The notes under the pieces: generated by a model
Database searches by the model: none
What the model saw: the letters and a program-made list of their open reading frames with translations, nothing else
Told to the model about the DNA's origin: nothing
In this document: in pieces, positions 1 through 62,514 of the stretch
Position numbering within the stretch: the first letter of the stretch is position 1
How the letters are laid out: each line of letters starts with the position of its first letter
Assembly: GCF_021869535.1 (NCBI RefSeq)
Contig: NW_026262690.1
Location: forward strand, 15,996,001 to 16,060,000
Direction of reading: 5' to 3'
From: Mytilus californianus
Taxonomy: Eukaryota
Length of the DNA: 64,000 nt
Program-made: the position numbers and the translations under genes

Positions 1-2149
1 TTCACTTCCAGTGTATATATAAAAGGGCCATTAAACTGACGTCATACTGATATGTAGTAACCGTTTTTAACCTTTTACAGACTTGAAGGATTGACTTTAT
101 TAATCTAAGCACTTTGCAAAAATTTTCTATAGGATTTTCCCACCTAATAGTCGATTTTGAGACTCTCCAGTTTTTTCACCACATAAATTGTACATGTTAA
201 ATGTTGCTTTGTACAGAATAAAAATCACTAATCTGGACCGTAAGCGGATTTTCAACCTTTAATTTGTTTATTTATTTTTTAATTAATTCAGCTGATTTGT
301 TTTCCGTTACTTTTCTTGGAGCCCAAATAATAAAGATACATTGTGTATAAATCCAGACTTGTATTGTAATCGGTAAAATCTTTATTATCTAAATAGATTT
401 CGATTATGACTGAGACAATCATTGATCTATGACAATCAGGCATTTACCTGGTGATTGTATGACCTACATGTATGCATGCTTAAATATTAACGGTATTAAG
501 GACGGACACTAAATATATCCAAACTCGTTTTAAACTAAGAGTCGATGTGACGTCATACATTTGAAAATGAACCACTGATACATTGTACACTATCTGTGAG
601 ATGTTTCCTCTATGCCATTAGTCTAACATTTGGATTAACAAACGAAATGGAAGACATGTTTTAAATTGATTGCTTATTAAATCCTTACACCCTTCAATAT
701 CTGCAATGAAAGACTAAGTAGATACTTGCAATTTAAATATTCTATCAATGCTTTGAATATTGTCGAACCCTATCTACGAGAGGTTAAATGTATAATTTAC
801 AGATCGACTATTATCATCGCGATCTCTGGTATCGACAAAACATGTACACTGATTGAAAACACTAACGTTGTACAGTTGTGAGGAACAGGCAGACAAAAAC
901 GATGACAGAAAAGACGAAAAGGGTTTTAATTTTAAAGACAAGAAGATAATTCCGTATCTAAAGTGAAGATAACGGATTTGAAGAACAAAAGCACGGAGAA
1001 GGAACGATATGCACTCTGAGAAACGAACAGTTGTGGTCTTTTGAAAATATAAAAGAAATATAGAATGGAAAGTTTGATTGCCGTGAACATTGGAATAGGA
1101 ATGAGCAAAACATCTTCCATCGATGAAGTGAGCACATTAAGGAATAACCGAACTAAATTTGTATACGGCTAGGGAGCGGTATATGTAGTACTGGAACTTT
1201 GTTATGTAGAGCATGCTTATTCATTAATCATTTAAACCATGTTAAGCGTCAAACGTAGTCTTTCCAAATTTTCCGGAAGTTTTGCGTTGATTGCTGAGTT
1301 AAAGAGCTTCGGTCCTTCTTGGAATATTGTTCAGAGGGTTATATATATGATTTCGAAACGTTGCTGTGATATTTGTTGAGAATGTAAAGACGTTGAATAT
1401 GTTGTCAAAGTGTTAACTGTTTTTTCATGCTGACTACCGGTATTAATCCGGTTTACTATTAGTTGAAACAGCTGTATTCAAATTTGGTTTTCTCGTTTTT
1501 CTTTTTGGTTGGTCCTCTACCGTTAAATTGTGGCTTGAGTTTTTTATATTTTGAAAGGTCTCACAGATGTCACTTTCAACGTTTTATTCATAGATGTGGA
1601 ACAAAAAGTATACCTTCTCCGAGTTTTGATATTCAAACAACTGATAATTATTGATTGGATCTAATTTCTTAAATCGTAGCCACAATGTACTTTCTAGTTC
1701 ACAACTGTAGTAATATAATCAACTTGACTTCTATGATCTTTAAATTGATTCTCTCAAAGACGTTTTCAATTTCAATTTTGAAGTATCCTTGGGTAATGCG
1801 GTATTCTTATCTGTCAGTATTCAATATTTGAGAGAGCGGTCAAACAATACTTCTCATACACGTTTGTACTCTTTGCTCTCAAAACTGTGTTCTGTTAGAT
1901 ATATTTCTTAGCCAAAACCAAATGTTTAAATTTAATGATCTTTAGAACTTTCGTCGGCTATATTTACCAATGGAGATATGTTTTCTGTAATGCAGAATGT
2001 ATATGTCTGTTGAAAAGTGTTGGGAGTATTTTAAAAGTAAAAACTTAAAGAATTAACTTTGTCCTTTACCATGTTAATCGTACTACTATGAGTGTCTTGT
2101 TTAAGAATTAGGAATAAATGAGCACTCATGTTATCCCACATACAAAAAC

Positions 2150-3693
2150 AGATCATTTGGCAAGAATGAGATTTTGGCGAATCACAATCCTTCATGAACA
2201 TTACATTGAACAGGAATCTGAGGAATTACCTTGTTTGCATTGGATACCTAAGCTTCAGAAAATTCGGTACACACAACGGAAAATTGCCGGCTCATCTGTA
2301 TGTTCTACAAAGGAACTGTCCATTAGATTGACAACATTTCAGTCCGCAGTGAAAGAAGGTCTTCAGAAATACTGTGAAACTGTTTACTCGTGTAATGGTA
2401 TTAACCATATGTGGATTCTAAAACAAATAGTCCACAATGCTTTCCAATATCAAATATTTTTATAACTATATATCAAGACTATAAATTTATTGCTTTGGGA
2501 TACCATACGACATATTTAGTTAATAGTGAACAAAAAGGTAAGTAATGCTACACCGAGGACCAAATGATCAGTTTCTTATTGACAACATATTTGTTGAATT
2601 TGGAGGTAGACTTTTTCAACAAATTGTCGGCATTCCTATGGGAACGAACTGTGCGCCTCTCCTTGCCGACCTCTTCTTGGGTTCTATTTATATATCCTCC
2701 AGAACTAGAAATTAAAGAAACAACAGACACGGCTTCCTCCACCTCATTTTTAGATTTATACTTCGAATTTGAAATAAGCGGTCATCTCAGAACCAGAATC
2801 TATGACAAACGAGACGATTTTGATTTAGAAATTATAAATTTTACACACCTCAGCAGCAATATACCAACTTCACCTGCATATAGGATATACATTTCCCAAC
2901 TCATTCGGTATTCGAGAGCTTACAACTGCTACTCAGACATTATAAAACGTCACCAGTGTCTGATCAAAAAGTTAATGAACCAGGGTTATGTCAAAGAACG
3001 TCTCGTCCTTTTTCTACAAAAGTTCATCGGAAGAGACCAAGACCTTGTTGATAAATATTCAGTATCAACTTCACATATAAAACATGATGGTCTCAAAGTA
3101 TAGAGTCTAGGTACTGACGTTGTTTATCATCTTAACTACGTGTTATAGTGTTCTTTTTATTTGTCTGTTTATTTTCAACCTTTACTGTTTAGTCCATTTT
3201 TGGTAACATCCTTATAGCTTGGCTCGGTATTTATACATCCCGCCATTGTGTTATTGTGCTTTGGTCATTTTTTGTATTCTTGTCGTTCATTTTTGCTTAT
3301 GTGCTTTGTCTATAGAGTGTCTATCTGCCATTTTGTTTTTCTTTGTTGACATAGTTGTTTGTTTTAATAGTGATTAAAATAATAACACAATGTTTACTGC
3401 TGTACGCCAATTTTTTTTACATTTTTATCTTTTATGTCTGTTTGTTTTGCTTACAAATTGCTGTCAATATAATGGAATTTTATGCGACTGTCATACAAGT
3501 GAGAGGTTTAGCTAGCTATAAAACCAGGTTTAATCCACCATTTTCTGCATATGAAAATGCCTGTACCAAGTCAGGAACATGACAGTTGTTTTCCATTCGT
3601 TTGATGAGTTTGAGCTTTGTTTTTTCCATTTATTAAGGGACTTTCCGTTTTGAATTTTCCTTGGAGTTCGGTATTTTTTTTATTTTACTTTTA
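2150..3693 (+). mobile_element. Naiad-type Penelope-like retroelement, subfamily 1; 5'-truncated and internally deleted RT plus 3' UTR
   Basis: ORFs 2118-2465 and 2564-3103 plus adjacent frames give LPCLHWIPKL, GIPMGTNCAP and IYDKRDDF...NIPTSPAYRIYISQLIRYSRA, all PLE RT motifs. The 3' UTR ends in ...ttccttggagttcggtatttt. Same subfamily as the copy at 52905-54530. Confidence 0.88.
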
Positions 3694-4176
3694 ACCACAT
3701 TCTGGAGTGCTCGGGAATTTGTTGTGGCCGTCATGGGCTGATCTGATAAGTTTAAACCGATCTGTTGTACCCGTATTCGATTTCACCTTTTAGTAAATGT
3801 GTGGACAGGACAAACTGCGAATGTATGTTTGTGATTCCTTGTTAAAATAGAAAAGGTAAAATCACTGAATAGCTGCAAAAGTAAACTTGATAATTTATTG
3901 TAGTAAAGATCCATACGACAAACTTGTGGCCGTGTAATATCAACCAAGATTAGGGCTTGATGTTGATGTCAATAAAAGTTTAAAAAAACTTATGTTTAGG
4001 GAAATACATCTATTTCAATGTAGAAGGTTAAATAATTATTTCGTCGTTGTTATTTCAAACTCTTTCCAAACTGTCGTTGTGTTTGTGATCTTTGTTGCTG
4101 CTGAAGTAGTCCTTGTAAAGTTGGACTAACAGTCTGTCTTGACTGGAAGCTTAGATTACTTCACATTTTAGAAAAA

Positions 4177-15233: not shown

Positions 15234-15595
15234 GAAAACCAGCTATTTATGTACACAACAAACGAAAAAAATATGATATACAGCAACACACGACAATCAG
15301 AGAATTACAGGCTCCTGACTCGGGACAGAAATCTACAGAATGTGGCGAGGTTAAACATGTTTAGGGGCGCCCAATCCTTCCAACCTGATCCAAACCAATC
15401 ACAACTAATAAAAACATAATGCATCCAAGACTAAATATCAATAAGTACACATACCGTGACTGGGTTTGGTGTAAAGACGTGATAAACAGTCTATGAAAAC
15501 ATAACCTTTTGCAATGCATAAAATATTATTATGGACAGGACGTAGAACCGTAAGCGTTAATAACTCTATAGCAATACATATTTTGTTATGTTTTA

Positions 15596-15933: not shown

Positions 15934-16789
15934 TTATTGACATGAAAATCAATGTTAGTACCGATGGAAGTGATATGCAAAGATCTGATTACAATGTTAA
16001 ATTGATAACATTTGAGAATAAGTTTATTGAAAGGATCGATAAGCTTACATGGATCGTATCTTCATTTAATACAAAAGTATGCATCTTAACAATTCGGGCA
16101 GGATTGGCCTTCTAATTGTGTTGGGTTACTAATACAAATACAAGGTGGATCCATTTACGCTCCCTCTTGACTCCATATATATTTCTAATTTTTGTGGAGT
16201 TTGAAGCACCATCTGATCTAAAACTTTGGCATAAAAAGAAGAACCCACATAATTTAATGTTTCATTGAAACGTCCCATTTGCAATAATCACGAAAAAAAT
16301 GGTCAGAATTTGCGTGAAACTTTAACTTTGACGCCTGATTCAGTGTTCGAAGAAAGACAACTGTTTTTAAAGAAATATGAACAAAATCATGAAAATAGTT
16401 CCCTACATTTTCAAAAGGTCTGTGACATATTTGGTCTTATTTGACAGAGTACACAAAATCTTCCCCTTTTGTCTTGTAACACAGGTAGATATTACTGGAA
16501 AAGAATTCTTTTTGTCTATTATATTTGGCGGGAAAAAGTTGATGTTTCAGGGGACAATTAATCTGCTATTTATCTCATAGCCAGTAAACAAGTGTACGGT
16601 ATTTCATTGAAAACGCTAGTTTAAACCTTTAAAATATCAATGTCATATCAATGTTTCTGTCCTAAGGCAGGAAGTTTGTCATTAGCTGTGTTCCTTGGTC
16701 CTTTTCTCAATATAGACTAACTGTTGATGGTAAATCTTTTATAGTTTATATTACATTTACATTTTCCCTTCAGGCTTCCTGACGGTAAA

Positions 16790-23770: not shown

Positions 23771-24687
23771 AATTGATTATTTTTTAAATAGCATGAACAT
23801 AAGAAATAACTAATAGTGTTCACTACAAATTGTTTCATAATATTAAAAAAAAAACACACATTTTAGGAAATTCCAATAAGCATCTATATGGAATAAAAAA
23901 TAATCCTTTAAATACTCTTAATTTTGCTTGAAGGTAATTTTTTTATCCCAGCCATATGTCTCTATTCTAAAGCATTAATCTTTAAAAAAAAAAGGGGGAT
24001 TCTAACTCCCGTACCATAAATTTTCATGATTTTATAAAAAAGCAGCATTTTTTCCTCTACATTCATCCAAATAAAAAAAATTTCGTCGGTGATTTGTTCA
24101 TAAAATTTGGTAAAAATAATCCACAAACATAATTAAGCCAAATGTCATTTTGAAAAAGAGGGATCTATGTACTAGTTTGAAAGCTAATGGTAAGAATCAG
24201 TCGAAAAGTACATCTTTTAAAAGATCGTTTGTATCAATTTTTATGAACAAATCACCGATGTACTCTTTTCTTAAATAGATAAATATACATTACAAAATGT
24301 CGTTTTTTTTCTAAAATTATGAAAAATTCAATTAAAATTAATTAGTTCCAAAGAATTGTTACATAAATTTAGAGTATACTTATGTAAAGAAGATATTCCA
24401 AATCAAATTCATATACAAAAATCCGCCTGCGTTTATCTTTTATTACAAAAAAGATAGGTATGTCTGTCCAAAGGATAGAAATTCTAAGAAACAGAAATTT
24501 TGAGTAAGTGTCTAAAATTTCGACCCCACTTATCTCTAACAGTAGCACATGAAGATACATTTTTATTACATATTGAATTGACTTGGTAAAAACTAGCGTG
24601 TATGCAAATTGTCGTCAAAATATCACCGTAGGATCAAAACTGTATCGCATACGTCACATTTTGGCTCCCCTAGCATAAAAGGCCATG

Positions 24688-25825
24688 TTTTACACGGGAA
24701 ACTCTACACTAAAATTTACGACAAACAGGATGATTTTTTCTATCCCTATTGTTAATTTTCCTTTTTTGGACGGTGTTTATATACATCACAACTCGTTCGC
24801 TATGCCCGTGTCTGTTGTGACGTTTTGGATTTCAATGAACGTAATCTATGTGTTACTGTATTACTGTTAATTATAAAGCCAGGGATTTCGTTACCACAAA
24901 TTACTTAAAACCTTTACTAAATTCTTCCATAGATATAAAGATTTGGTTTGGATGTACCTGTATAAAACTTATTTTAAACGGGATACCACATCCTAAGTTT
25001 TACGGACAAGTTGTTTACCGAGCCCGGAAATTTAGATACGATGCGGGTAAACTTATCGATCCTTTAAAATTATTCTAAAAGGTTACCAATTCAACACTAT
25101 AACTATATCTTTGAATATTGTTTTTATTGGTATTAATACAAACTAATATTATTTTTATATACATATGCACATTCATGGCTCTACAATTTGTCGATACCTG
25201 TATCTTGGCATTGCACAAGGTCGTGTTTTTCTCTGACTGTTAATGACGTCTTTACACTAAATCCATTGGATGTTGGATGTGTACAGGTTGATATGTTAGT
25301 CTTAGATGCATGTTTTTTTTATTAGTTGCTATTGGCTTTGAACTAGCTGTCAGTAATTGCGAGTACTCTCAGATCTGTACTTATTATCTTTTTGTTGTTT
25401 GGATGTATAAGTACTCTGCCACGTCCACTCTGTGTATTTGTTAGATGTATTTCTGCTTTGTATCTATTTGATGACTTAAGCCCTTTTCAACTGATTTCTA
25501 TAGTTTGTTCTTATGTTGTACTGTTACACTACTGCCCCAGGTTAAGGGGGAAGGGGGATTGGCGCCTTCAAACTAGTTTAACCCCGCCATATTCTGTATG
25601 TGCCTGTCCTAAGTCAGGAGCCTGTAATTCAGTGGTTGTCTTTTTATGATGTATACCATATTTGTTTTTCGTTCATTATTTTGTACATAAATCAGGCTGT
25701 TAGTTTTCTCGTTTGAATTATTTTACATTAGTCATTTTGGGGCCTTTTATAGCTGACTATGCGGTATGGGTTTTACTCATTATTGAAGGCCGTACAGTGA
25801 CCTATAGTTGTTAAATTCTGTGTTA
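24688..25825 (+). mobile_element. Naiad PLE subfamily 2, RT C-terminus plus 3' UTR with SECIS-like hairpin
   Basis: Frameshifted GKLYTKIYDKQDDFSIPIVNFPFLDG...ARVCCDVLDFNERNL...GFRYHKLLKTFTKFFHRYKD...HPKFYG; homologous to the C-terminus of ORF 60532-61839. Confidence 0.88.
25235..25301 (+). promoter_or_regulatory. Candidate type II SECIS element (Naiad subfamily 2)
   Basis: GACTG-tta-ATGAC-GTCTTTACAC-T-AAA-TCCA(TTGGATGT)TGGA-T-GTGTACAGGT-TGAT-atgt-TAGTC. Helix I, AUGA/UGA core, ~10-bp helix II with wobbles and one mismatch, AAA and an apical mini-stem; folded by eye. Confidence 0.6.
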
Positions 25826-26734: not shown

Positions 26735-28135
26735 TAAGAAGATGTGGTATGATTGCCAATGAGACAACTCTCCACAAGAGACCAAATATCACAGAAATTA
26801 ACAACTATAGGTCACTGTACGGCCTTCAATAATGAGTAAAACCCATACCGCATAGTCAGGTATAAAAGGCCCCGAAATGACTAATGTAAAATAATTCAAA
26901 CGAGAAAACTAACAGCCTGATTTATGTACAAAATAATGAACGAAAAACAAATATGATATACATCATAAAAAGACAACCACTGAATTACAGGCTCCTGACT
27001 TAGGACAGGCACAAACAGAATGTGGCGGGGTTAAACTAGTTTGAAGGCGCCAATCCCCTTCCCCCTTAACCTTAGGGAGTGGTGTAACAGTACAACATAA
27101 GAACAAACTATAGAAATCAGTTGAAAAGGGCTTAACTCATCAAATAGATACAAAGCAGAAATACATCTAACAAAAACACAGAGTGGACGTGGCAGAGTAC
27201 TTATACATCCCAACAACAAAAAGACAATAAGTACAGATCTGAGAGTACTCGCAGTTACTGACAGCTAGTTCCAGGCCAATAGCAACTAATAAAAAAAACA
27301 TGCATCTAAGACTGAAATATCAATCAGTACAAACCCTACATCCAATGGATTTAGTGTAAAGACGTCATTAACAGTCAGAGAAAACATGTGCCTTGTGCAA
27401 TGCCAAGATACAGGTATCGACAAATTGTAGAGCTATGAATGTGCATATGTATATATAGATTCTTACATTGATACCAGTGGATTATCGGATTTATCCAATC
27501 GAGAGAGTTAAATTATCAGTTTAAAAGTCCGAGCCTCGGCGAGGACTTTAAAATTTATAATTTAACTATCGAGATTGGATAAATCCGATAATTCACCAGT
27601 AACTATGTAAGGATCTGTTTCTCTAATGAATAAAAAATAAATTTTCTTTTTTTGTTAAACGAAAATCCCCTTCGAGTGCCTTTCACATTCCACGAAGTTG
27701 TCAATTTCATTAACACCTGTTAGCATATTTTGATTCATCCAGTTAGTTAAAAAGGTTATGACCCTTAAAATCATCCAATGATCTTTTGAGATCACCGGCA
27801 ACCACACGTTAATTAAATTATTTTATACAATGGGTTCGGAAAGGGATAAATTTCCATTGAATTAGAGAAATAAAAATAATATTAGTTTGATTTTAATTTA
27901 CTGATAACAAAATCAATATTAGTACCAATAAAAACAGTATTCAAAGATCAGACATTATCTAATTATAGTGTTGAATTGGTAACCTTTTAGAATAATTTTG
28001 TTTAAAAGGATCGATAAGTTTACCCAGATCGTATCTAAATTTCCGGGATCGGTAAACAACATCTCCGTAAAAATTAGGATGTGCTATCCCGTTTGAAATA
28101 GTTTTTTTTAAGTTATATACAGGTACAAATGCATG
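26735..28135 (-). mobile_element. Naiad PLE subfamily 2, near-identical inverted partner of 24688-25825, with intact terminal hairpin; interrupted by HINE 27457-27870
   Basis: ORF 27031-27219 is nearly identical to 25392-25649. Terminal aagaagatgtggtatgattgccaatgagacaactctccac; SECIS-like hairpin at 27310-27376; RT C-terminus at 27871-28135. Confidence 0.88.
27457..27870. mobile_element. HINE-like (Helentron-associated) non-autonomous element
   Basis: 160-bp terminal palindrome (27457-27616) followed by short inverted repeats tttctctaat (27618) and attagagaaa (27861). Removing it restores the host Naiad sequence seen at ~25140-25170. Confidence 0.7.
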
Positions 28136-36485: not shown

Positions 36486-38680
36486 AGATCCTACTTATGT
36501 TAAAAGTTACCGTGGGATAACAGTTACTTCAGTCTTAGGAAAGGTATTTAAAAACTGCATCTTACCAAAACTTAGTATGGCAAATATAAATGAACTTCAA
36601 TTTGGCTTTACAAAAGAACTAAACCCTCTAATCTCAAGTTTTATAACAACAGAATCAAAATATGATCAAGCAAGGAAAAGCAGTGAATTCTACACGAGAT
36701 TTCTTGATGTTCAATCAGCATTTGATGTTGTACAACATGACATTATTTTTGATAAGGTATTAGATTGCAAAATCCCTCCTGTTTTGTGGCTTGTTATCAA
36801 AGATTTATACATCAGCTTGAGTTCAAAAGTTAAATGGCAAGATCAGAAGACATCAGCGAACGTTTTCCGGCGCTCCAAGGTGTGTGACAAGGAGGAATCT
36901 TATCTACTCATGTGTACAAAATCTTTGTTCAAGATCTTCTGGAATTGGAAAAAAGTTCTCTGGGCTACAACCTGGGAAACATATATGTTGGAACACCAAC
37001 CTGTGCTGATGATATGGTCTTCATTTAATCAAACACTGTACGATACACCAGTAACAAATTCAAAGGAAACAACTCATTTAGGTATATCAAGAAGCTGAAA
37101 AAAGAAGGAGAAATTAATGTAGCCAATCGCTTAAAAGATGCAAGAAGAACCTTATATGCATTGATGTGAAGTGGGGGTGATCGGGACAAATGGATTCGAC
37201 CCATTAACATCTTACAAAATTTACACCTATGTTCTGCCACGATTGCTACACGGATTGGAAGTTATTCCTCTAAACAAAACAAACATCTCACAGCTAGAAG
37301 CATTCCATAGAAAAACCTTGACACATCTTCAATCATTACCTCAGCAGACGGCTATAGCAGCAATATACCTTATGATCGGCATACTCTCAATTGAAGATGT
37401 ATTACTTAAAAAGCAGTTATCTTTCCTCTATAACCAAAACTTTACGACAAAAGAGATGATTTCAGCTTTCCAATAGTGAACTTCCCTTTCTATGTAGCAA
37501 CATTCCAGCAGCACCTGCACACGGAGTAAATGTCTCCCAGCTGATACGATATTCAAGGGCTTGTATTTCCTATCATGATTTCCTTGATAGAGGGTTGCTG
37601 CTTACAAGGAAGCTATTAAACCATGAGTTCCAAGTGGTGAAGTTGAAATCGTCCCTTTGTAAATTTTACGGACTATAAAACTATAAAAATCAGTCGAAAA
37701 AGGCTTAACTGATTTATCCATCCCTCATCCCTAACAACAAAAAGGACACTAAGTACAGATCTGAGGGTACTCGCAGTTACTGACAGCTAGTCAATAACCA
37801 CTAATAAAAAATCATGTATCTAAGACTTTGTCACTTTATTTTTGACTTGTGAGTTTTAATGTCCCTATTGTATCTTTCGCCTCTTTTTCTATTAACTTCC
37901 AAAACTCCAGAAAGTAAAAGACATTATCATCAGGCAAATGTCTGTTAATTTTGAGAACCACTACAGTTTTTTTTCTCAACAATTAGAGAGGTTTTTGCAA
38001 AAAACGGGTTGCCACCATTCCACCAATTACACGAGACTATACCTTTAAAAACAAGTTGGAAATTTATGGTAACAAAGAGTTTATAAAAACCATTGGTACA
38101 ACACGTTATTGGATCGCTGAATCGAAAACAACCCTTAAACACTTCGTTATGGAAATAAATCATACCGTTTGAAATATCCACGACAAAACAAAAGTTGACA
38201 TACGAAAAGCCAATATAAAAACCAGAATCTTATCAGGAACATTCAGCCTTAACTCTGATAGAGCTAAATTCAATCGGTCTCCAACATCATTATGCCAGCT
38301 ATGTCGTCTTTCCGACGAAGATATTACTCATTTTCGTCTAAACTGTCCACTTTTAGCGTAAACTTACACAACTTATTTCCAACCGATTAAGATGGAATAA
38401 TACAAAACACTGTTGCCAAAACCTGGCATGGATTATTCAACAAACAAATTGGACATACTCAGGCTTATTATTGACTGTAGACACTTTACTCATCTTTTCA
38501 TTGACATCAATCTGATGGATACAATCGAAGCATTTACTAGGAAACTCTGCAACAGGCTTCACCTCAAACGTTTGAAAATGCTGGAGGCAATGGTTGGTTG
38601 GCGGTCTAAAGCAAATATTGTTAGACCAACAGATAAAAGCGGAAGACATTTGAAATTTATGCACCGTACTCTGTGTGTAT
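36486..38680 (+). mobile_element. Non-LTR retrotransposon (LINE) RT plus C-terminal CCHC knuckle, degraded; inverted 3' portion
   Basis: DPTYVKSYRGITVTSVLGK, LQFGFTK, FLDVQSAFDVVQH, PTCADD-region remnant, LPRLLHGLE; CQLCRLSDEDITHFRLNCP (C-x2-C-x8-H-x4-C) at 38293-38346. Clade not resolved. Confidence 0.88.
37436..37888 (+). mobile_element. Naiad PLE subfamily 3 fragment nested in the LINE, containing an inverted subfamily 2 piece (~37680-37826)
   Basis: KLYDKRDDFSFPIVNF...NIPAAPAHGV..SQLIRYSRAC...KLKSSLCKFYG; terminal tgagttttaatgtccctattgtatctttcgcctcttttt, as at 42970-43007. Confidence 0.8.
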
Positions 38681-40458: not shown

Positions 40459-42489
40459 TCATGTCTATTCGCTGATTGATTTCCTTTGATGGCAGTTCGT
40501 TCTTTTGCAACTCATTTAAAAGTACCTCCTTATATTTATCTTCATCCCTTTTTTCCAAAGACGATGCATGTTTCTGTCATTATCTAAAATAGTCTTCATT
40601 GCTTATTGTAAGTATTACAACTCAATTAAAGATACAGCAATTAAGTTATAAATTGGAAGTAAACGTATTACCTGATAGGTAGGTTGCGTGCAGACAAAAC
40701 AAACGCTTATTATTTTTTGATAAAAAATTGAATGTTTGTTGTTATAATGTTTCCCTTTCTTCATTACTGTCGGTTAATATGTGGGTTAAAGGATTTATCA
40801 CGCAAAAGTAGATCATTGACATGTCGGAGAGCCTTGTATAGACTGACCAGAATTTTTGGAAATACATTCTGACATCATTTCTGACTTAGTTTATTTCAGT
40901 GAAAAATATAGCTTAGTCCTAGCAAGAACGTATCTCGTATTATATATGAATTTTTCAAGGGCTACTGAAGTTCAGATATAATAAAAGGGTAAAACTCAAA
41001 CACATTCCAAGGGCGATAAAAAGGTGGATTTAAGAAAAAGTCGAAATTCAATCACATTCCAAGGGCGACAAAAAGCTGGATATAAGATAAGGCTGAATCT
41101 CAAACATATTCCAAAAATACTTGTTGTTTTATCACCATATTATCTTGCTACTTTATCGCATCATCAGCATGTAAGTGACTAGAACTATATATAGTAATCG
41201 AGTTTATAACTGAAGAACGAATAATTTTATTGCATTTGATTGTTTGGATGTTTAAATGTAGACGGAAATGAAGATTAATTTGCATTAACTCCAAAAGGTT
41301 TCATTTATGACATAATTTTGTCAATAAATAGCTTCAAAAGGGTTATCGTCTGCTAGGTTATTCACATGAAACTGCTTGACAAGAAACCGGAAATGAAATG
41401 ATTCCGTCATCCCTAATTTGTATGAAATACTGCTGACTGCTTTTGTATAACAAAACCATTCTTCATAACACTTATAAGGTTTGTTTCTTTGAAAATAGAA
41501 ATTAAGAAGGTCTTTGGGAAGGACGGATGTTGGTATACATTCATCTAATAATACTCATGTTATATCTATCTAACATCTATCTATTATAACAATGGCCTTG
41601 GATGTTGTCCTATGGAGAAAAAACACTAGTGTGTTGAGGTGAAAATAAAACAAAATTGGATTACAGAGATGATAATAGCGTCTTTAGTAATAGGCAAGGT
41701 CGAAAAAAGAAAAACACCAAACAACTTTTAAGTAAAACTTGTATCAATGAAAAAAATATAAGGTTTACGCTAACCAGATTGCATCCTGACGACACCAAAA
41801 TGCAAAAATACTGTTTAACAGAGGTCAACAGTAGTACAGTATTTAAATCTCTAGTTCAAAATGTCCAGTAGTCCATACTAAAGAGATCGGGCAGCAGTCA
41901 CATGTATTTATATTACTCACTTGTACAAATTCGGAAATTGCTGAAAATTACCAAATATAAAGTCTCAGTGACACCGTACATTAATATTTCATTTATTTAA
42001 CATTAATCTTGTTTTAATGGTACTATGTACACATCATTCACCAATATGTATTAATTTGTATGTGGAAAGCATGAAATAGCTTCATTTCCGATAGAATATT
42101 TTACAGAAGTCAAAAGAAAAGAAATAAAAACTACAGTAAAGATTTAAGCTTTATAATCTGGGTAAATATTCCGAATACGACAGTATGTTGTCGAGAACTC
42201 ACGATGAAACTTTTATACTGCCAAAAGTGGTAACAATCGAAAGATTTGTATAAATAAGTTCTTTGGTGAAATAATTCAGGAATAATTGGCCCATTAAATT
42301 CATGTAAGCATGTTTGTATGGAACCAATTGAGAAATAAAAATGATGATATTAAATTCCTTTTCTTTCAGATTTGTTGTTCTATTCTTGGTATTACATACA
42401 CAAATATATTTGTTAGCCAAAACAAATGTATTAACTTAAAGAGGAGAAGTTAATTTCCTTTTTTGTTTAAGAATATTATTATCTTGACT

Positions 42490-43007
42490 TGCATCTAAAA
42501 ATTGACAATGAAGGTCGGTTGAAAGCAAAACTTTACGACAAAAGAGATGATTTCAGCTTCCCAATTGTGAACATTCCTATGTAGTTCCAAATGGTGAAGT
42601 TGAGACCATCCCTTCGTAAGTTTTACGAACGCCATCATAAGTTGGTTGACCGTTATGAAATATCCGTTTCGCAGATGATAGCGGATATGTTCCTAATGTC
42701 GTAACTACAATCCCGTCCCCCTTTCCCGAATGTGACCTACCGAATTAGACTTATTACCGGGTTTGTTCTAACATGAGCAACACGATGGGTGCCACATGTG
42801 GAGCAGGATCTGCTTACCCTTCCGGAGCACCTGAGATCACCCCCAGTTTTTGGTAGGGTTCGTGTTGCTCAGTCTTTAGTTTTCTATGTTGTATTTTGTG
42901 TACTATTGTTTGTCTGTTTGTCTTTTTCTTTTTTAGCCATGGCGTTGTCAGTTTATTTTCGACTTATGAGTTTGAATGTCCCTCTGGTATCTTTCGCCCC
43001 TCTTTTA
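42490..43007 (+). mobile_element. Naiad PLE subfamily 3, deleted RT C-terminus plus structured 3' UTR
   Basis: LKIDNEGRLKAKLYDKRDDFSFPIVN...FQMVKLRPSLRKFYERHHKLVDRYEISVSQMI; long stem structure at 42775-42870. Confidence 0.85.
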
Positions 43008-44712: not shown

Positions 44713-46089
44713 GGAGATGTGGGGGTAGTCAATGAGACATCAACCTCAAAAACAATAAAACCAACAATTAAATAAAAAGGTCAACATAAGCCTGGTATAT
44801 TTGATGATTTTATACAATATAAATCAAAGCACTTTGAGCTTCATGACAGGTTTTGAAACAGTATGAAAGTAGTTATGATGGGCTTCAAATTATGATTATA
44901 ATAGTTTAATAGACTTGTAATTTCATTCGTTTAAAGGAACATTAGTCGTCAAATTCATGTCCACCGATTTGACTCAAATTCTCATATTTATAACATACTA
45001 AAAAGTATATCAAAATTAAAAAAAGTCTAAAATAAACAATAAACAATGCATGGACTCGATAATATATATCAGCATTTCGTGTGTGTATTAGTCTAGACGC
45101 CATCTAATTAAAACCATCGAGATGACCTCTGAAGACTGCCGAGTCATATAACCCGATATAAACATAAGTATGAATATAAATAGATAGCGACCACGTGCAA
45201 TTGGATTTTTCTAGGTTTGTTTGATTTCATGTTAAAGGTTAAAACATATATGTTAATCATCGTTTTTACCTGTATAAGAATGATTTTTGTGGATCGAATC
45301 AGCCAAGGAAATGGTTCACCCTTGTTTCACCTTCAATGTTAACATTAATCTTTTCCTTTTAATAGCTGAACACGCCTAGTATATGCGTAACCCATCTCCA
45401 GCTAAGGGGTTAAATTAAAGTTCACATGAATACGGATTAACATGAGGTCAACTTATTCACTTGCAAGTCAATAATACATCAGTGATGTTTTTGGGCTTAT
45501 TTTGACAAATTTGGGACAAACTAACTGCTTATAACAAAATGTATATTATTTCAAAATTCCGCTTTGATTAAAACTTGAAACAAAAAGAATCGTATTTTAA
45601 TTTTTGTCAAAATCGTAGATAAAGCAGTGCATTAGAATGAATTATTTCGTAACATTCCATAAAGGTTATCAAAGTTATAAGTGTTTAAAAATATTTAACC
45701 CCATAATGTGTGTAAACGTTAACGTTAAATCAAAAACGTATTCCATCTACCAGTAAAACACTGAAGTATAAAACATTATTATATATTTTTGTAAATAATA
45801 ATTGTTAAAATTTTTAAAAAGGGACATGCTAAAAGACATAATTAATTGTCAGTTTGGTCATGATAATGCCGAGTTCGAATTTGAACCTCTCTGTCACATG
45901 AAATGCACATGTTGTACTGTACTTTATGAATGAATTTGATAATTTCATAATCAACCCCCATATATATCATATTTAAAAAATCACACGCGAAATCAAAGGA
46001 ACCAAGATGTGATAATACATTTGTTTTTTATTACAATCCGTACGTTCACTGTTTTACTTTAATTCTAAGCCCGTAAATTTAGATACAAT

Positions 46090-46850
46090 CAATGCAAACT
46101 CTTTGGTCCTTTGAATAAACTTATTGTTAAATGATATCAATTTAACACAGTTGTAAAATCTTTGAATATTGTTTTTATCGGTACAAATGTACTAAGTTTA
46201 ATAATATTGATTTCGTTTTTGATAAAATGAAAACCTTATGTTTTTGTAATTCACAAGGTCATGCTTTTCGCAGACAGTTTATGACGTCTTTACACCATAT
46301 CTGGTGTATGTGCACTGATTGATACTTTAGTCAGGAAGAAAAGGATTTATTTATGTGTTGTCATTGGCTTTGAACTAGCTTTCAGTAACTGTGAGAAGAT
46401 CGGCACTCTGTGTGTTTTGTCTTTATGTCGTTGTTTTTGTCCTTCATGCCGATCTGATGAGTCAAATCTTTTCCAACTGATGTTTACAGCTTGTTCTGAT
46501 GTTATGCTACTACAACCAGTGTCCCAAATTAAGGGAGCGTTGAGACGTCACAAGCATATATAACTCCGCCACATTCCATATGTGCCTGTCTCAAGTCAGG
46601 GGCGTGATGGTTGTCGTTAGTTGCTGTCGGTCATATGTTTGTCGTTTATTGTTTCGTCATTAATCAGGCAGTTGGTTTTATCGTTTGAATATTGTTAAAC
46701 ATTTTGTCATGTCGGAACCTTTTATAGCTATATATGAGTTTTCCTCATTGTTGAAGACCATACGGTGACCTGGTTGCTTAAGTCCGCTTCTGGTGGATTC
46801 TGGTGGATAGTAACTGTTGTCTCATTTGCAATCATAGTTACCTTTATATT
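46090..46850 (+). mobile_element. Naiad subfamily 2, degenerate RT end plus 3' UTR with decayed SECIS-like hairpin (46273-46332)
   Basis: KLFGPLNKLIVK*YQFNTVVKSLNIVFIGTN; atgacgtctttacacc...gtgcactgattgat; ctgatgagtc; tgcctgtctcaagtcagg. Confidence 0.75.
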
Positions 46851-52904: not shown

Positions 52905-54530
52905 GAAGTAAAATAACAAACCTACCGAACTCCAAGGAAAATTCAAATCGGAAAGTCCCTTATCAAATGGCAACATCAAAAGCTCAAACACATCAAACGA
53001 ATGGAAAACAACTGTCATATTCCTGACTTGGTACAGTCATTTCTTCATGTAGAAAATGGTGGATTAAACCTGGTTTTATAGCTACTAGTAGCTAAAACTC
53101 TCACTTGTATGACAGTCGCATAAAATTCCATTATATTGACAACAATGGGTGAACAAAACAAACAGAAATTTTAGGTAAAAAAATGTCAAAAATAGGGGTA
53201 CAGCAGTCAACATTGTGTTATAATCTTAATCACTTAAACAAAAACCAAACAAATATGCCAACAAAGAAAAAAAATTGCATATAGACAAAGCACATAAGCA
53301 AAAATGAATGACAGGAATACAAAAAATGACCACAGCACAACAGCACAAAAAATGAATGGCGGGATGCATAAGTACCGAGCCACGCCAAAAGGATATTACC
53401 AAAATATCCTACTAGTAAACAGTAAAGGTATATATTTTACAAATACAAATAAAAGAACACTGTAATATGTAATTTAGATGATAAACAACGTCAGTACCTA
53501 GAATCTATACTTCAAGACCATCATGTATTATTTTTGAAGTTGATACGGAATATTCATCAACAAGGTCTTGGTACCTTCCGATGAACGTTCGTTGACATAA
53601 CCCTGGTTCATCAACCTTCTGCTCAGACACTGGTGACGTTTTATAAAGTCTGAGTAGCAGCTGCAAGCACTTGAATACTGAATGAGTTGGGAAATGTATA
53701 TCCCATATGCAGGTGAAGTTGGTATATTGGTACTAAGGTGGGGGAAATTGATAATTTCAAAATTAAAATCGTCTCGTTTGTCATAGATTCTAGTGCTGAG
53801 ATAGCCGCTTATGTCAAATTCGAGGTATAAGTCTAAAAATGAGGCGGAGGAAGCCGTGTCTGTTGTTTCTTTAATTTCTAGTTCTGGAGGCTATATTAAT
53901 GGAACCCAATCAGAAAAGTTTGGATTGTTAATGGAAACAACAATATCAATATATCTGAATGTAAAATTAAATGATCTCTGGCTTCTTTGATCTTCTTGTT
54001 TTTGACAAGTGTCTGAAGGAACTCCGACTGATATGAAAACAAAAAGAGGTCCGTAAGGAGAGGCGCACAGTTCGTTCACATAGGAATGCCGATAATTTGT
54101 TGAAAAGGTCTACCTCCAAATTCAACAAATATGTTGTCAATAAGAAACTCCAGCATACTGATAACTTTTTCCTCTGTGTAGACTGTTTTACCTTTTTGGT
54201 CACTATTAACAAAATATGCGGTATGGTATCCCAAAGTAATAAATTTATAGCGTATGCTACCATTTTTATATTGAAAAACATTGTGGAATATTTCTTTTAG
54301 ACGATTTTTCAATTTCACATGGGGAATGGTGGTATACAGGGTGGAAAAATCAAAAGTTTTGATAGAATTAATTTCAGAGAAAGATCGCGATTTAAAATTA
54401 TCCAGAAGTTCTCTAGAGTTTTTTATAATCCACATATGGTTAATACCCCTACGCGAGTTAATAGTTTCACAGTATTTCTTAAGACCTTCTTTCACTGCAA
54501 TATATAATGGTAGAAAGGTCTAAGAATATT
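52905..54530 (-). mobile_element. Naiad PLE subfamily 1, 5'-truncated RT plus 3' UTR
   Basis: ORF 54076-54495: HMWIIKNS...KTFDFSTLYTTIPH...LIDNIFVEFGG...QQIIGIPM; then RYIDIVVSINN and downstream motifs. 3' UTR matches 3104-3693. Confidence 0.9.
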
Positions 54531-59375: not shown

Positions 59376-60415
59376 TAACGATGACAATTTTAGTTCCAGT
59401 TTTATTATCTAAACTTTTGAACAGGAACGAGAGAAAAAAAAGGAAGCTCAAACTCAGCAGAAAAAAAATATTGATCTAATGTTAAATATGTTACAAACCG
59501 TTCAGTTTTCATTGTTACTCGACGCAAAATTATTATCTACGATATCTTGGACAATCTTATTTTATAAAGGATAATTTTTGTTAAATTAATATTGTACCCC
59601 GAACTTATTGACCTTTAATATCTTTAAGTTGTTTATTTACTTAAAGTTGATCAGGATTGACCAATTAGACACACCTCCTTAGAATTAGGGGGACCAAAAT
59701 AGAATCGAAAGAAACGGCAACAAAAATACCATCTTTACAATTTAAAAGAATGAAAGTGTATTGGGTTGATCATCTCAAGTTAAAATCAGATTTGGAAATT
59801 CAAACCTATAAATCTTATTTACTTATAAATGGCCTTTATAATTCATTTCTTTTTGGCATTTTTCTACCGTGAAAAGAAAGGAAACAAACAATAAAATTGA
59901 GAATGGAAATGGGGAATGTGTCAAAGAGACAACAACCCGACCATAGAACAGACAACAGCAGAAGGTCACCAACAGGTCTTCAATGAAGCGAGAAATTCCC
60001 GCACCCGGAGGCGTCCTTCAGCTGGCCCCTAAACAAATATATATACTAGTTCAGTGATAATGAACGCCATACTAAACTCCAAATTGTACACAAGAAACTA
60101 AAATTAAAAATAATACAAGACTAACAAAGGCTAGAGGCTCCTGACTTGGGACAGGCGCAAAAATGCGGCGGGGTTAAACATGTTTATGAGATCTCAACCC
60201 TCCCCCTATACCTCTAGCCAATGTAGAAAAGTAAACGCATAACAATACGCACATTAAAATTCAGTTCAAGAGAAGTCCGAGTCTGATGTCAGAAGATGTA
60301 ACCAAAGAAAATAAACAAAATGACAATAATACATAATTAACAACAGACTACTAGCAGTTAACTGACATGCCAGCTCCAGACTTCAATTAAACTGATTGAA
60401 AGATTATGTCTTCAT

Positions 60416-60480
60416 CATATGAATATCAGGCACAATCCTTCCCGTTAGGGGTTTAGTATCATACCATCATAACATATATG
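60416..60480 (-). promoter_or_regulatory. Type II SECIS element
   Basis: Minus strand CATATATGTT-ATGAT-GGTATGAT-ACT-AAA-CCC(CTAAC)GGG-A-AGG-ATTGTGCC-TGAT-ATT-CATATG. AUGA at 60467-60470, AAA at 60452-60454, UGAU at 60425-60428; helices I and II and the apical mini-stem all pair. Confidence 0.85.
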
Positions 60481-60531
60481 AGAAGAACATAACCCGTGTC
60501 ATGCCAACAACTGGTTTTTAAATAAATGTGT

Positions 60532-62514
60532 TTAGTGCCGATGCAAAGACCCTATAAGTGAATCAATATTAACGCCAAAATATGCAATCTTTAATGACCT
60601 GACAACAGTATCGTAACTATTTCCCTTCTTAATAAGTCTATTTAAAGGTTTTGTTAGCTTCAGAGGTGAATACTGACATTTTTGTGCTTTATAAAGAATA
60701 TTTCCATAAAAAATTGGATGTGAAATACCTGAACGTATAAGAAGTCTGCACGTTGAGCTATATTTACGAATGATGTCCTTATACCGATGATAAAATTTAG
60801 TAAATGTTTTGACTAGTTTGTGATATCGAAAACCCTGGTGTAATAATTTTTCAGTAATACATAAATTTCTCTCGTTAAAATCTAAAACATTGTTACATAC
60901 ACGAGCGAATCGTACAAGTTGAGATATATAAACACCGTAAGATGGTGACAAGGGAACGTCACCATCTAAAAATGGATAATTAACGATAGGAAATGAAAAA
61001 TCATCTCTTTTATCATATATTTTAGTATTAAGCTTTCCGTTAATGATATAGATATCAAGATCGAGGAAAGGGCAGTGGTCATTGTTAGTATTAGCTTTAT
61101 TTAAAGTAAGTTCAACAGGATAAATTTCTTTAGTATACATACTGAAGTCGTCATTATTGAGAGCCAAAATATCATCCAAATATCTAAAAGTATTATTAAA
61201 TTTGTGTATCAGATGTTGTTTCGATGGGTCTTTGCTGATTTTTGTCATAAATTGTAACTCATAGCAATACAAAAAAAGGTCCGCAATAAGTGGTGCACAG
61301 TTAGTCCCCATTGGAATTCCGATAACCTGACGATATACGGAATCTCCAAAGCGAACAAAAATGTTATCTAGTAAAAATTCAAGGGCATACATAGTATCAA
61401 AGCATGTCCAATTGACATAGTTTTTTTGTTTATTGCTACTAAAAAATGACCTAAAAGAGTTTGAACATATATATTCACATTCTGACTTTTTAAATGCCCA
61501 TTTAATTAGGTGTGTGAATTTTTTCTTAATGAGAATGTGAGGCAATGTGGTATATAGGGTAGAAAAATCAAAACTTTGAACAGATTCAAAATCACCAATA
61601 TATGCATGTAATTTATCAAGTACTTCCAACGAGTTCTTGACACTCCAAAAGTAATTAAGTCCACTATTTTCGAAGGCCTTATTTGAACAATTTATTATCA
61701 GGTTTTTGATTGTACCAAGTGTACTGGTAAGAAGAATAGACAATTTAGTAGTGGAAAAATGGCTTGAAGACGAAATGAATCTATATTTGTAAGGTGTTTT
61801 GTGTAGCTTCGGAAGCCAATACATAGTTGGGACTTTCATTGTATTTGGTTCTGCTTGTAAAGCGGTAGCTAAAAGTTTATGTTTGTTACAGATGTCGTTT
61901 TCTGAAAATGGAGTCAGTTGGAATGTTGGTGAATTGGTGATTTCTTTTTTCAGAACCTCAATGTAAAATTTACGTCAAACAATAAAAATATTATTAGCAG
62001 CTTTATCGGCCGGGACAAAAACAAATTCCTTGGCTAGTTCTTTTAGTTTATGTTTGATACGAGAAATAGGTTTATTGTGGTTATTGTTAAGAGTAAAATG
62101 TTCTTTAAAATGTTGAATACGTATATCAACTATGTTCATTACTGAATTAAAAAAAGAGTCCAAAGATTTTTTGTCAGCTTTTTCCCGTTTTATCCATTTC
62201 AAACAGTAAGTATGGAGTGAGTCGTGTATGATATTACGACACTCATTCCAATTAATAATTGACGGGGGACGATATTTAGGTCCTTTACTGAGGAATGATT
62301 TTAACTCTCGGTCTTGAACGATGTTAAGATCTCCTGTTATAACATGGAAAATGGGTCCATAAATGTATTCGGAATTACTGCAATTACATGAAGTAGGTGT
62401 ATTCTCACTGATATTAACATCTTTACACAATTGGCTATAATTAAACACAAATTTCCGGGTAGATTTCTTGTAAATATAACTGGGTCATGGTTCAACTTTA
62501 TTCTTGTAAGGCAT
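60532..62514 (-). CDS. Candidate selenoprotein RT ORF (up to 660 aa) read through TGA at 61975-61977 and possibly 62485-62487
   Basis: ORFs 61975-62448 and 60532-61839 are in one frame, joined by ...NNIFIV-TGA-RKFYIEVLKKEI...MKVPTMYWLP. Upstream ATG CCT TAC...GAA CCA TGA CCC AGT TAT is also in frame. Terminal stop is TAA. Confidence 0.75.

Follow-up and report, generated by a model that had tools for sequence, protein, structure and literature searches.

The window analyzed here (a stretch of 64,000 nucleotides from Mytilus californianus contig NW_026262690.1, positions 15,996,001 to 16,060,000) carries on its minus strand a 5'-truncated copy of a young retrotransposon, a Penelope-like element (PLE) of the Naiad clade that we refer to as family A. 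Comparison of this copy with its full-length counterparts and with related families indicates that full-length family A elements very probably decode four in-frame UGA codons as selenocysteine (Sec) by means of a selenocysteine insertion sequence (SECIS), a hairpin in the 3' untranslated region (UTR). The window copy is itself a dead-on-arrival, inert insertion; it is the family, and not this locus, that is of interest. Selenoprotein-coding transposons are known from a single paper, which described four families by sequence inference only; a young, abundant, and expressed family in an easily obtained animal offers a practical system for studying a putative multi-Sec transposon enzyme.

In the mechanism that we propose, the SECIS (~60 nt after the TAA stop codon) would recruit the SBP2, eEFSec, and Sec-tRNA of the host, and ribosomes would insert selenocysteine at all four UGA codons to yield a full endonuclease-reverse transcriptase. 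This enzyme would copy its RNA into new sites by target-primed reverse transcription, leaving behind 5'-truncated and partly tandem copies. We infer that the inserted residue is Sec (not another amino acid), that it is important for activity, and that retrotransposition is selenium-dependent.

Four in-frame TGA codons in a young family

We searched the genome that contains the window (1.65 Gb, 175 contigs) at the DNA level; of 3,684 first-look candidates, 40 were scored, and these were 99–100% identical. Comparison of 30 loci defined a 4,020-bp family A unit that has no poly(A) and one fixed 3' end; this single 3' end was found at all 30 loci, together with 20 different 5' ends. Head-to-tail arrays with a period of 4,020 bp, in which the tail of another copy precedes full copies, display the pseudo-LTR (pseudo-long terminal repeat) or partial-tandem habit of PLEs. 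Family A is very young (99% identity), numbers ~1,500 or more copies, and is transcribed.

The full-length open reading frame (ORF) runs for 1,002 codons from ATG to TAA and contains four TGA codons (55, 86, 97, and 522) but neither TAA nor TAG. Codon 55 stands for the second cysteine of a CX2-5CxxC motif (C-x4-U-x2-C at codons 50–58, U marking the TGA), codon 86 for the cysteine before GIY, and codon 97 for the first cysteine of CCHH. The latter two flank the GIY half of the GIY-YIG domain (..IT-U-KTNSIIYLLT-U-NKPGCGIQYVGETGR..), such that U97-x4-C is placed between GIY and YIG. Codon 522 lies at the eighth residue after the DKA motif (DKA+8). A first-pass annotation, made from the window sequence, had recognized this last UGA and no other: the codon is real, but is one of four in the full-length unit, as the window copy lacks the first 353 codons. 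The same annotation held that DKA+8 is normally Cys, which agrees with the Cys found there in relatives that read through, namely TGT in the related locus L031 and Cys in the predicted proteins P0002-4 and P0281-3. Moreover, all four TGAs align to Cys in the Cys-type Naiads P0281, P0282, and P0283 (29–34% identical). The chance that a random nonsense codon falls on a Cys-to-TGA route is 0.0625 each, giving p ~1.5e-5 for four out of four.

The TGA codons are fixed within the family. The three upstream TGAs are kept in 16 of 16 loci that reach that far, and TGA522, the TAA stop, and the exact SECIS core occur together in 29 of 29 loci. TGA522 itself was found at 30 of 30 loci, a recurrence that rules out chance. 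A pattern search with codon 522 left free found 1,540 genome sites, with TGA at all of the 100 listed. Nearly all scored copies (73 of 74) have no stop besides TGA522 within the 587 amino acids matched, and ~30 of the 74 retain the whole 905-codon frame behind codon 97.

Several simpler accounts of these codons were rejected. A TGA private to the window copy is contradicted by the same codon at the 100 listed sites and the 29 loci, and an assembly error by the recovery of the site 1,540 times. A decaying pseudogene is at odds with the absence of TAA and TAG in frame and with a ratio of nonsynonymous to synonymous substitution (dN/dS) far below 1, as described below. An alternative genetic code of the host was dismissed on the grounds that the ORF ends in TAA, that host Sec machinery is present, and that the 'W' found at Sec positions in public proteins is an artefact of translation with code 4.

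Cysteine and putative selenocysteine codons exchange among related families

Since family A copies are 99% identical, fixation within the family proves little, and the argument rests on comparison between families. Searching public predicted proteins with the reverse transcriptase (RT) piece yielded 3,268 homologues, many of which are ~480 amino acids long and start just behind the TGA position, with others reading through with Cys or 'W'. DNA was fetched for seven related families that are 53–80% identical to family A in the RT part. The closest, L031 (80%), has TGA at 55, 86, 97, and the first Cys of CxC, and TGT at 522; in L034 (75%), whose sequence is incomplete at the 5' end, codon 522 and the codon for the first Cys of CxC both read TGA. 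L035 (69%), which is present in the same genome at 94% identity and is here called family B, has five TGAs, as does L036 (62%), with codon 58 among them. L032 (61%) has TGA at the same four sites as family A, and L038 (56%) has three TGAs that equal the published clam pattern, with TGC at codon 55. In a further clade, L040 (53%) and L055 are broken copies with TGA at 522, and L053 has TGA at 86, 97, and CxC, with Cys at 522. At codon 385 (the first Cys of CxC), family A has TGT, and L031 and L035 have TGA. In the aligned genes, TGA and TGT/TGC exchange at homologous codons in otherwise intact frames, and predicted Sec alternates with Cys at six homologous positions when sister families are compared.

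Differences between family A and L031 are essentially saturated at synonymous sites (pS 0.45–0.92) and far fewer at nonsynonymous sites (pN 0.11–0.20). In each segment before, between, or after the TGAs for which dS was computable, dN/dS was 0.07–0.24, with values of 0.068 for codons 98–521 and 0.067 for codons 523–1002. Low dN/dS together with saturated synonymous sites shows that all parts of the frame are translated under selection and that the TGAs have persisted for that long.

A SECIS element downstream of the frame

The hairpin that follows the TAA codon was described at first pass as a type II SECIS (AUGA, 12 nt, AAA, mini-stem, UGAU), an assignment confirmed by its match to the Rfam SECIS_1 model and by its fold. 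SECIS_1 matches end to end at window positions 60416–60480 (31.7 bits, E 0.0013 for 3.4 kb searched, gathering score 35), and a related family scores as high as 34.3 bits. When folded without constraints, the minimum-free-energy structure recovers both helices (I and II) as well as the mini-stem (z = -3.0), and the spacing from AUGA to AAA is 12 nt. The distance from the stop codon, first put at about 50 nt, holds for the base of the stem (~50 nt) but not for the AUGA, which lies at 61 nt.

SECIS_1 hits occur at the equivalent 3' position in six families, and every Sec-type family has either such a hit or a hand-checked equivalent just 3' of the stop. The hairpin lies 50–140 nt past the stop in the A/B group and overlaps it in the L038/L040/L053 group; in L040 (4980–5032) and L053 (5335–5401) it begins inside the last ORF codons, and the TAA supplies the unpaired apical AA. 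When eight sequences representing seven families were aligned with MAFFT, 95% of the cells of the 10-bp helix II were paired and both sides had changed in 9 of 10 pairs, a score reached by 0 of 500 shuffles (slid registers were 41–51% paired). Across families, no change is seen in the UGA of the AUGA core, in the apical AA, or in the 3' GA; the first letter of AUGA varies (G in L036). The SECIS is conserved both among copies, by its exact core, and among families, by compensatory changes. Our own model R1, built from downstream-type SECIS elements, misses the stop-overlapping SECIS of L053 and L055, both of which are detected by SECIS_1. Two Cys-type Naiad loci from the same analysis, L058 and L059, contain no in-frame TGA and gave no SECIS hit at E ≤ 10 (~19 kb).

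These data bear on the possibility that the TGAs are ordinary nonsense codons in a non-autonomous lineage copied in trans by Cys-type Naiad proteins, with the hairpin acting as a SECIS-like 3' structure recognized by the RT. The RTs of PLEs are thought to recognize their own RNA 3' ends, conservation among copies that are 99% alike is uninformative, and the Rfam score falls under the gathering score, all of which would fit such a lineage. However, it would not account for all four stops being TGA and lying at conserved Cys codons, for strong purifying selection on either side of each TGA while synonymous sites are saturated, or for the swapping of TGA and TGY at homologous codons in the intact frames of several families. 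It is also difficult to reconcile with a hairpin that keeps its AUGA...AAA...GA core while helix II covaries, and that is absent from the Cys-type L058 and L059. We consider trans-copying of a nonsense-bearing lineage extremely unlikely.

Weighing selenocysteine decoding

Several points count against Sec decoding by family A. The protein cannot be made from the window copy itself, and fixation within a family of 99% identical copies is, alone, no proof of function. The SECIS_1 score is below the curated gathering score (31.7 vs 35), and one SECIS must serve four UGA codons located up to 2.9 kb upstream. RNA reads lie on both strands, and some of the coverage may be read-through from host genes. 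Finally, we know of no biochemical or ribosome-profiling support for Sec insertion in any Naiad.

The UGAs might instead be read through as a residue other than Sec (near-cognate Trp, Cys, or Arg) or might act as programmed leaky stops that control how much short versus long product is made. Leaky read-through of UGA is common in retroelements. Yet the sites are exclusively Cys sites within metal-binding-like motifs, which is the classic signature of Cys/Sec exchange, and all of the Sec-type families examined combine TGA with a canonical SECIS core, which the Cys-type ones lack. Furthermore, products cut inside the GIY-YIG domain have no obvious use. Read-through by another residue is, in our judgment, very unlikely, and decoding of the four UGAs as Sec remains the reading that we prefer.

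Naiad identity and protein domains

Identification of the element as a Naiad, originally made from the window alone, was upheld by the full-length unit, which combines an N-terminal GIY-YIG endonuclease, a CxC linker, a DKA motif, and a telomerase-like RT fold. Upstream of the RT, its single ORF has the order xIY...(U)...CGIQYVGETGR...EH...ELNWI...LGLNDN. Pfam searches of the TGA-bounded pieces did not find RVT_1 or GIY-YIG, and a sequence-profile search of the PDB gave no match, so domain identity was assessed from a fold search and from alignments to relatives that carry Pfam annotation. The alignment between the endonuclease region and P0283 spans 99% of that region, and the P0283 gene carries a precomputed, though faint, hit to Pfam PF01541. 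CX2-5CxxC and CCHH zinc-finger-like motifs are present in the endonuclease, with Cys at the U positions in Cys-type relatives.

An AlphaFold model of codons 523–1002, based on a 26-sequence alignment, had a mean pLDDT of 83.8. In a Foldseek comparison of this model with the PDB, ranks 1–15 were telomerase RTs (E 2.3e-9 to 3.3e-6), followed by other RTs; the telomerase-like fold predicted by the model is a hallmark of PLEs. YLDD is invariant across the 26 homologues. The motif A Asp (D136 of the piece) is separated from motif B (G219) by 83 residues, modeled with an extra helix and strands, which form a candidate insertion-in-fingers domain (IFD). No hammerhead ribozyme was among the Rfam hits at E ≤ 1 for the full-length unit or at E ≤ 10 for the window copy; this result, like CxC, DKA, the two zinc-finger-like motifs, and the tandem arrangement, agrees with the published description of Naiads (Craig et al. 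2021). The (TA)n microsatellite insertion bias was absent, as the flanks of 30 copies were AT-rich but not microsatellites; insertion at (TA)n is a bias in Naiads, not a requirement (Craig et al. 2021, PMC8557442).

The window copy and neighbouring Naiad remnants

The window copy corresponds to nt 1431–4020 of the unit and lacks the 5' UTR, the start codon, codons 1–353, and the GIY-YIG endonuclease domain (Table 1). Its 3' end (...TCTCAATTTTAT) is common to other copies, whose 5' ends vary in blastn comparisons. The element had been delimited as 59891–62514: the 59891 end holds, and the 62514 end does not, since homology to other copies begins at 62480. On the minus strand the frame is open from ~62478 to 60535, with the TGA at 61975–61977 as its sole interruption (ADKAANNIFIV-[TGA]-RKFY), and the initial description of one frame split by TGA alone, with a TAA stop and an intact YLDD, was accurate. 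The Phe of NNIFIV is private to the window copy: at window position 61986, nearly all RNA reads and the other copies have plus-strand T, not A, which gives Ile.

Table 1 Positions of the family A copy, its parts, and additional SECIS-like hairpins in the window.
Feature	Position	Strand	Basis or detail
5'-truncated family A Naiad copy	59891–62480	-	blastn to full-length copies, 99.3% identity
Linker and N-terminal RT region, codons 354–521	61978–62480	-	Translation; aligns with Naiad relatives
CxC motif CNC (TGT AAT TGC)	62380–62388	-	Sequence; first Cys is TGA in L031, L034, L035/B, L053
DKA motif, Naiad form of the PLE DKG motif	61999–62007	-	Definition of Craig et al. 2021, PMC8557442
In-frame TGA, codon 522 of full ORF, DKA+8, putative Sec codon	61975–61977	-	Sequence comparison
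RT core and thumb, codons 523–1002	60535–61974	-	AlphaFold model, fold search, dN/dS 0.067 vs L031
YLDD	61171–61182	-	RT motif, intact
True stop codon TAA	60532–60534	-	Sequence
Type II SECIS	60413–60482	-	Rfam SECIS_1 31.7 bits; own model R1 65.2 bits; covariation; fold z -3.0
SECIS AUGA	60467–60470	-	Helix I, 10-bp helix II, and CCC/GGG mini-stem also present
SECIS AAA	60452–60454	-	
SECIS UGAU	60425–60428	-	
Rest of 3' UTR/element tail, without poly(A)	59891–60412	-	Locus comparison; ends ...CAATTTTAT
SECIS-like hairpin, family B type	25231–25304	+	R1 39.3 bits
SECIS-like hairpin, family B type	27311–27380	-	R1 28.5 bits
SECIS-like hairpin, family B type	15425–15495	-	R1 16 bits
SECIS-like hairpin, family B type	46269–46335	+	R1 15.6 bits

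A visible share of the 64-kb window consists of Naiads. More decayed Naiad-like RT fragments lie at 2208–3094 (+), 37433–37669 (+), 42480–42611 (+), and 53597–54447 (-); these are 37–70% identical to the family A protein and contain frame changes. The four additional SECIS-like hairpins have the appearance of short tails left by 5'-truncated copies of a third Sec-Naiad family, and three of them lie ~60–450 nt 3' of decayed RT C-terminal fragments (24684–25170, 15948–16079, and 46069–46203). With the window copy included, the window holds five SECIS-bearing tails. Mytilus-type mussels contain at least two Sec-Naiad families, and probably three.

Because 5' truncation is the usual state of Naiad copies, SECIS hairpins lie ready-made across the mussel genome in their thousands. 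It is conceivable, though improbable, that such tails in host 3' UTRs enable new Cys-to-Sec recodings, or that they compete for SBP2. If true, competition for SBP2 would link the supply of selenium to both transposon activity and the synthesis of host selenoproteins.

Host machinery, transcription, and annotation

Two tRNA-Sec(TCA) genes are present in the host genome, scoring 79.6 and 77 bits against a cut-off of 47. The tRNA-Sec model also matches a tandem array whose period is 728 bp (G000:C154:27755505-27807263), with 50 or more weak and identical matches at 42.8 bits, below the cut-off of 47; this is probably an ordinary tandem tRNA gene array. Raw RNA-seq reads under the same species label cover the whole window copy, including the TGA and the SECIS, with no variant reported at 61975–61977. 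Reads map to both strands, and their depth climbs sharply in the 3' direction, indicating presence in RNA and not a defined full-length sense transcript or translation. Near-identical family A sequence was also found in sequencing runs of four species labels and in marine and gut metagenomes.

The first-pass annotation anticipated that gene predictors would truncate the protein at MKVPTMYW, and this is what public databases contain: P0001 (435 aa) starts at exactly this point, and the RefSeq models for family B are uncharacterized proteins of Mytilus edulis and M. californianus with 432 and 512 aa. Public 'W' residues at Sec positions reflect TGA read with code 4, as established by a DNA check of L055 (2501–4183), with the same pattern in P0241. 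Trp at Sec positions or late starts were seen in P0078, P0085, P0096, P0103, P0112, and P0241, and many other predictions begin with TTG, GTG, or ATG just behind the TGA. In the RefSeq protein P0291 ('sulfotransferase 1A1-like [Mytilus edulis]'), a stretch of ~55 aa matches the family A linker region at 84% identity; this host gene model is apparently a chimera that includes part of a Naiad. Among public assemblies, dozens of related families are miscalled, either with an ORF start just behind the TGA or with Trp. Such miscalled proteins hide Sec-coding transposons in databases, and RefSeq-style gene sets split or truncate these elements.

Origin of the predicted selenocysteine use

When eight Sec-bearing families were placed with three Cys-type Naiads in a maximum-likelihood tree (a small sample, rooted at the midpoint), all Sec-bearers fell in one clade (100/100) apart from the Cys-type Naiads, with two subclades: (L038, L053) and (B, L032, L036, (L034, (A, L031))). 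Codons 86 and 97 are TGA in every clade member with the region present. At codon 522 only L031 and L053 depart from TGA, and both are nested among families that have it; TGA at codon 55 is confined to the second subclade, and the CxC site varies repeatedly. This distribution points to one origin of Sec use in the sampled clade followed by repeated toggling.

It had been suggested at first pass that a mussel host would either extend the known range of Sec-Naiads or mark an independent origin. The extension of host range stands, as the mussel host is new; the independent origin fares less well. Some features do favor mussel Sec-Naiads having arisen independently of clam Sec-Naiads (whose consensus we compared by its published description): Craig et al. 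infer separate origins in spiders and clams, the mussel SECIS is type II and lies 50–140 nt past the stop as opposed to type I at 1–21 nt in clams and spiders, and family A has Sec at codon 55, a site that is Sec only in spiders in their study. However, three of the four Sec sites (before GIY, the CCHH first Cys, and DKA+8) are exactly the clam set, and L038, which has just the three clam sites and a SECIS at the stop, groups with mussel families in the 100/100 clade. Because three of the four positions are those of clams and all eight Sec-bearers form a single clade, we regard an independent mussel origin as unlikely.

Comparison with known systems

Sec-coding Naiads have been reported from two clams and two spiders, with three or four UGA codons each (Craig et al. 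2021, PMC8557442). In these four elements, the Cys before GIY and the DKA+8 Cys are always Sec, the CCHH first Cys is Sec in clams, and the cysteines of CX2-5CxxC are Sec in spiders; their SECIS elements are type I and are located 1–21 nt past the stop or overlap it (PMC8557442). Mytilus appears in that paper only as a host of ordinary Naiads, and our full-text literature searches found no Sec-Naiad paper later than it. Sec-coding Naiads as a phenomenon, and the DKA+8 codon exactly, are thus already published. What is new is the mytilid host, the combination of Sec sites, a type II SECIS further downstream, the evidence from toggling and covariation, and the breadth of families in public assemblies. 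Putative Sec at the first Cys of CxC in sister families is likewise new, as this site is not listed as Sec in the 2021 paper.

The clam elements (Naiad_Scon and Naiad_Mmer) resemble family A in Naiad architecture, a single 3' UTR SECIS, a bivalve host, and high copy number, and share with it the UGAs before GIY, at the CCHH first Cys, and at DKA+8. Their hosts are heterodont clams, whereas family A is found in a mytilid mussel (Pteriomorphia). Family A further differs in its fourth Sec, at the second Cys of CX2-5CxxC (reported in PMC8557442 only for a spider element), and in its type II SECIS ~50–60 nt past the stop, those of clams and spiders being described as type I and 1–21 nt past the stop or overlapping it. 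The spider elements Naiad_Sdum and Naiad_Smim (Stegodyphus) are like family A in having UGA in CX2-5CxxC, before GIY, and at DKA+8, plus a SECIS, but are found in arthropod hosts; chelicerate Naiads lack the IFD, and their Sec use was judged to be of independent origin (PMC8557442).

Cys-type Naiads (the M. galloprovincialis Naiad, L058/L059, and P0281-P0283) have the same domain order and motifs as family A, with Cys at the UGA sites. They differ in having no in-frame TGA and no SECIS, and are 29–34% identical to family A in the endonuclease-linker region. The M. galloprovincialis Naiad has a 5-aa insert in CX2-5CxxC (PMC8557442) that family A lacks. Beyond PLEs, telomerase RT is the nearest solved fold to the RT part of family A, as expected of PLEs, though the two share only 10–14% identity, and family A lacks TEN and TRBD and is a mobile element.

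Selenoprotein P, one of the few proteins in which several Sec are read processively from UGA, offers a further parallel for multiple Sec in one frame, and is reported to contain particularly many Sec residues in bivalves (Baclaocos et al. 2019, cited in PMC8557442). Its gene belongs to the host and usually has two SECIS elements along with Sec-rich tails, whereas family A has one SECIS, and its predicted Sec residues replace metal-ligand-like Cys in an enzyme.

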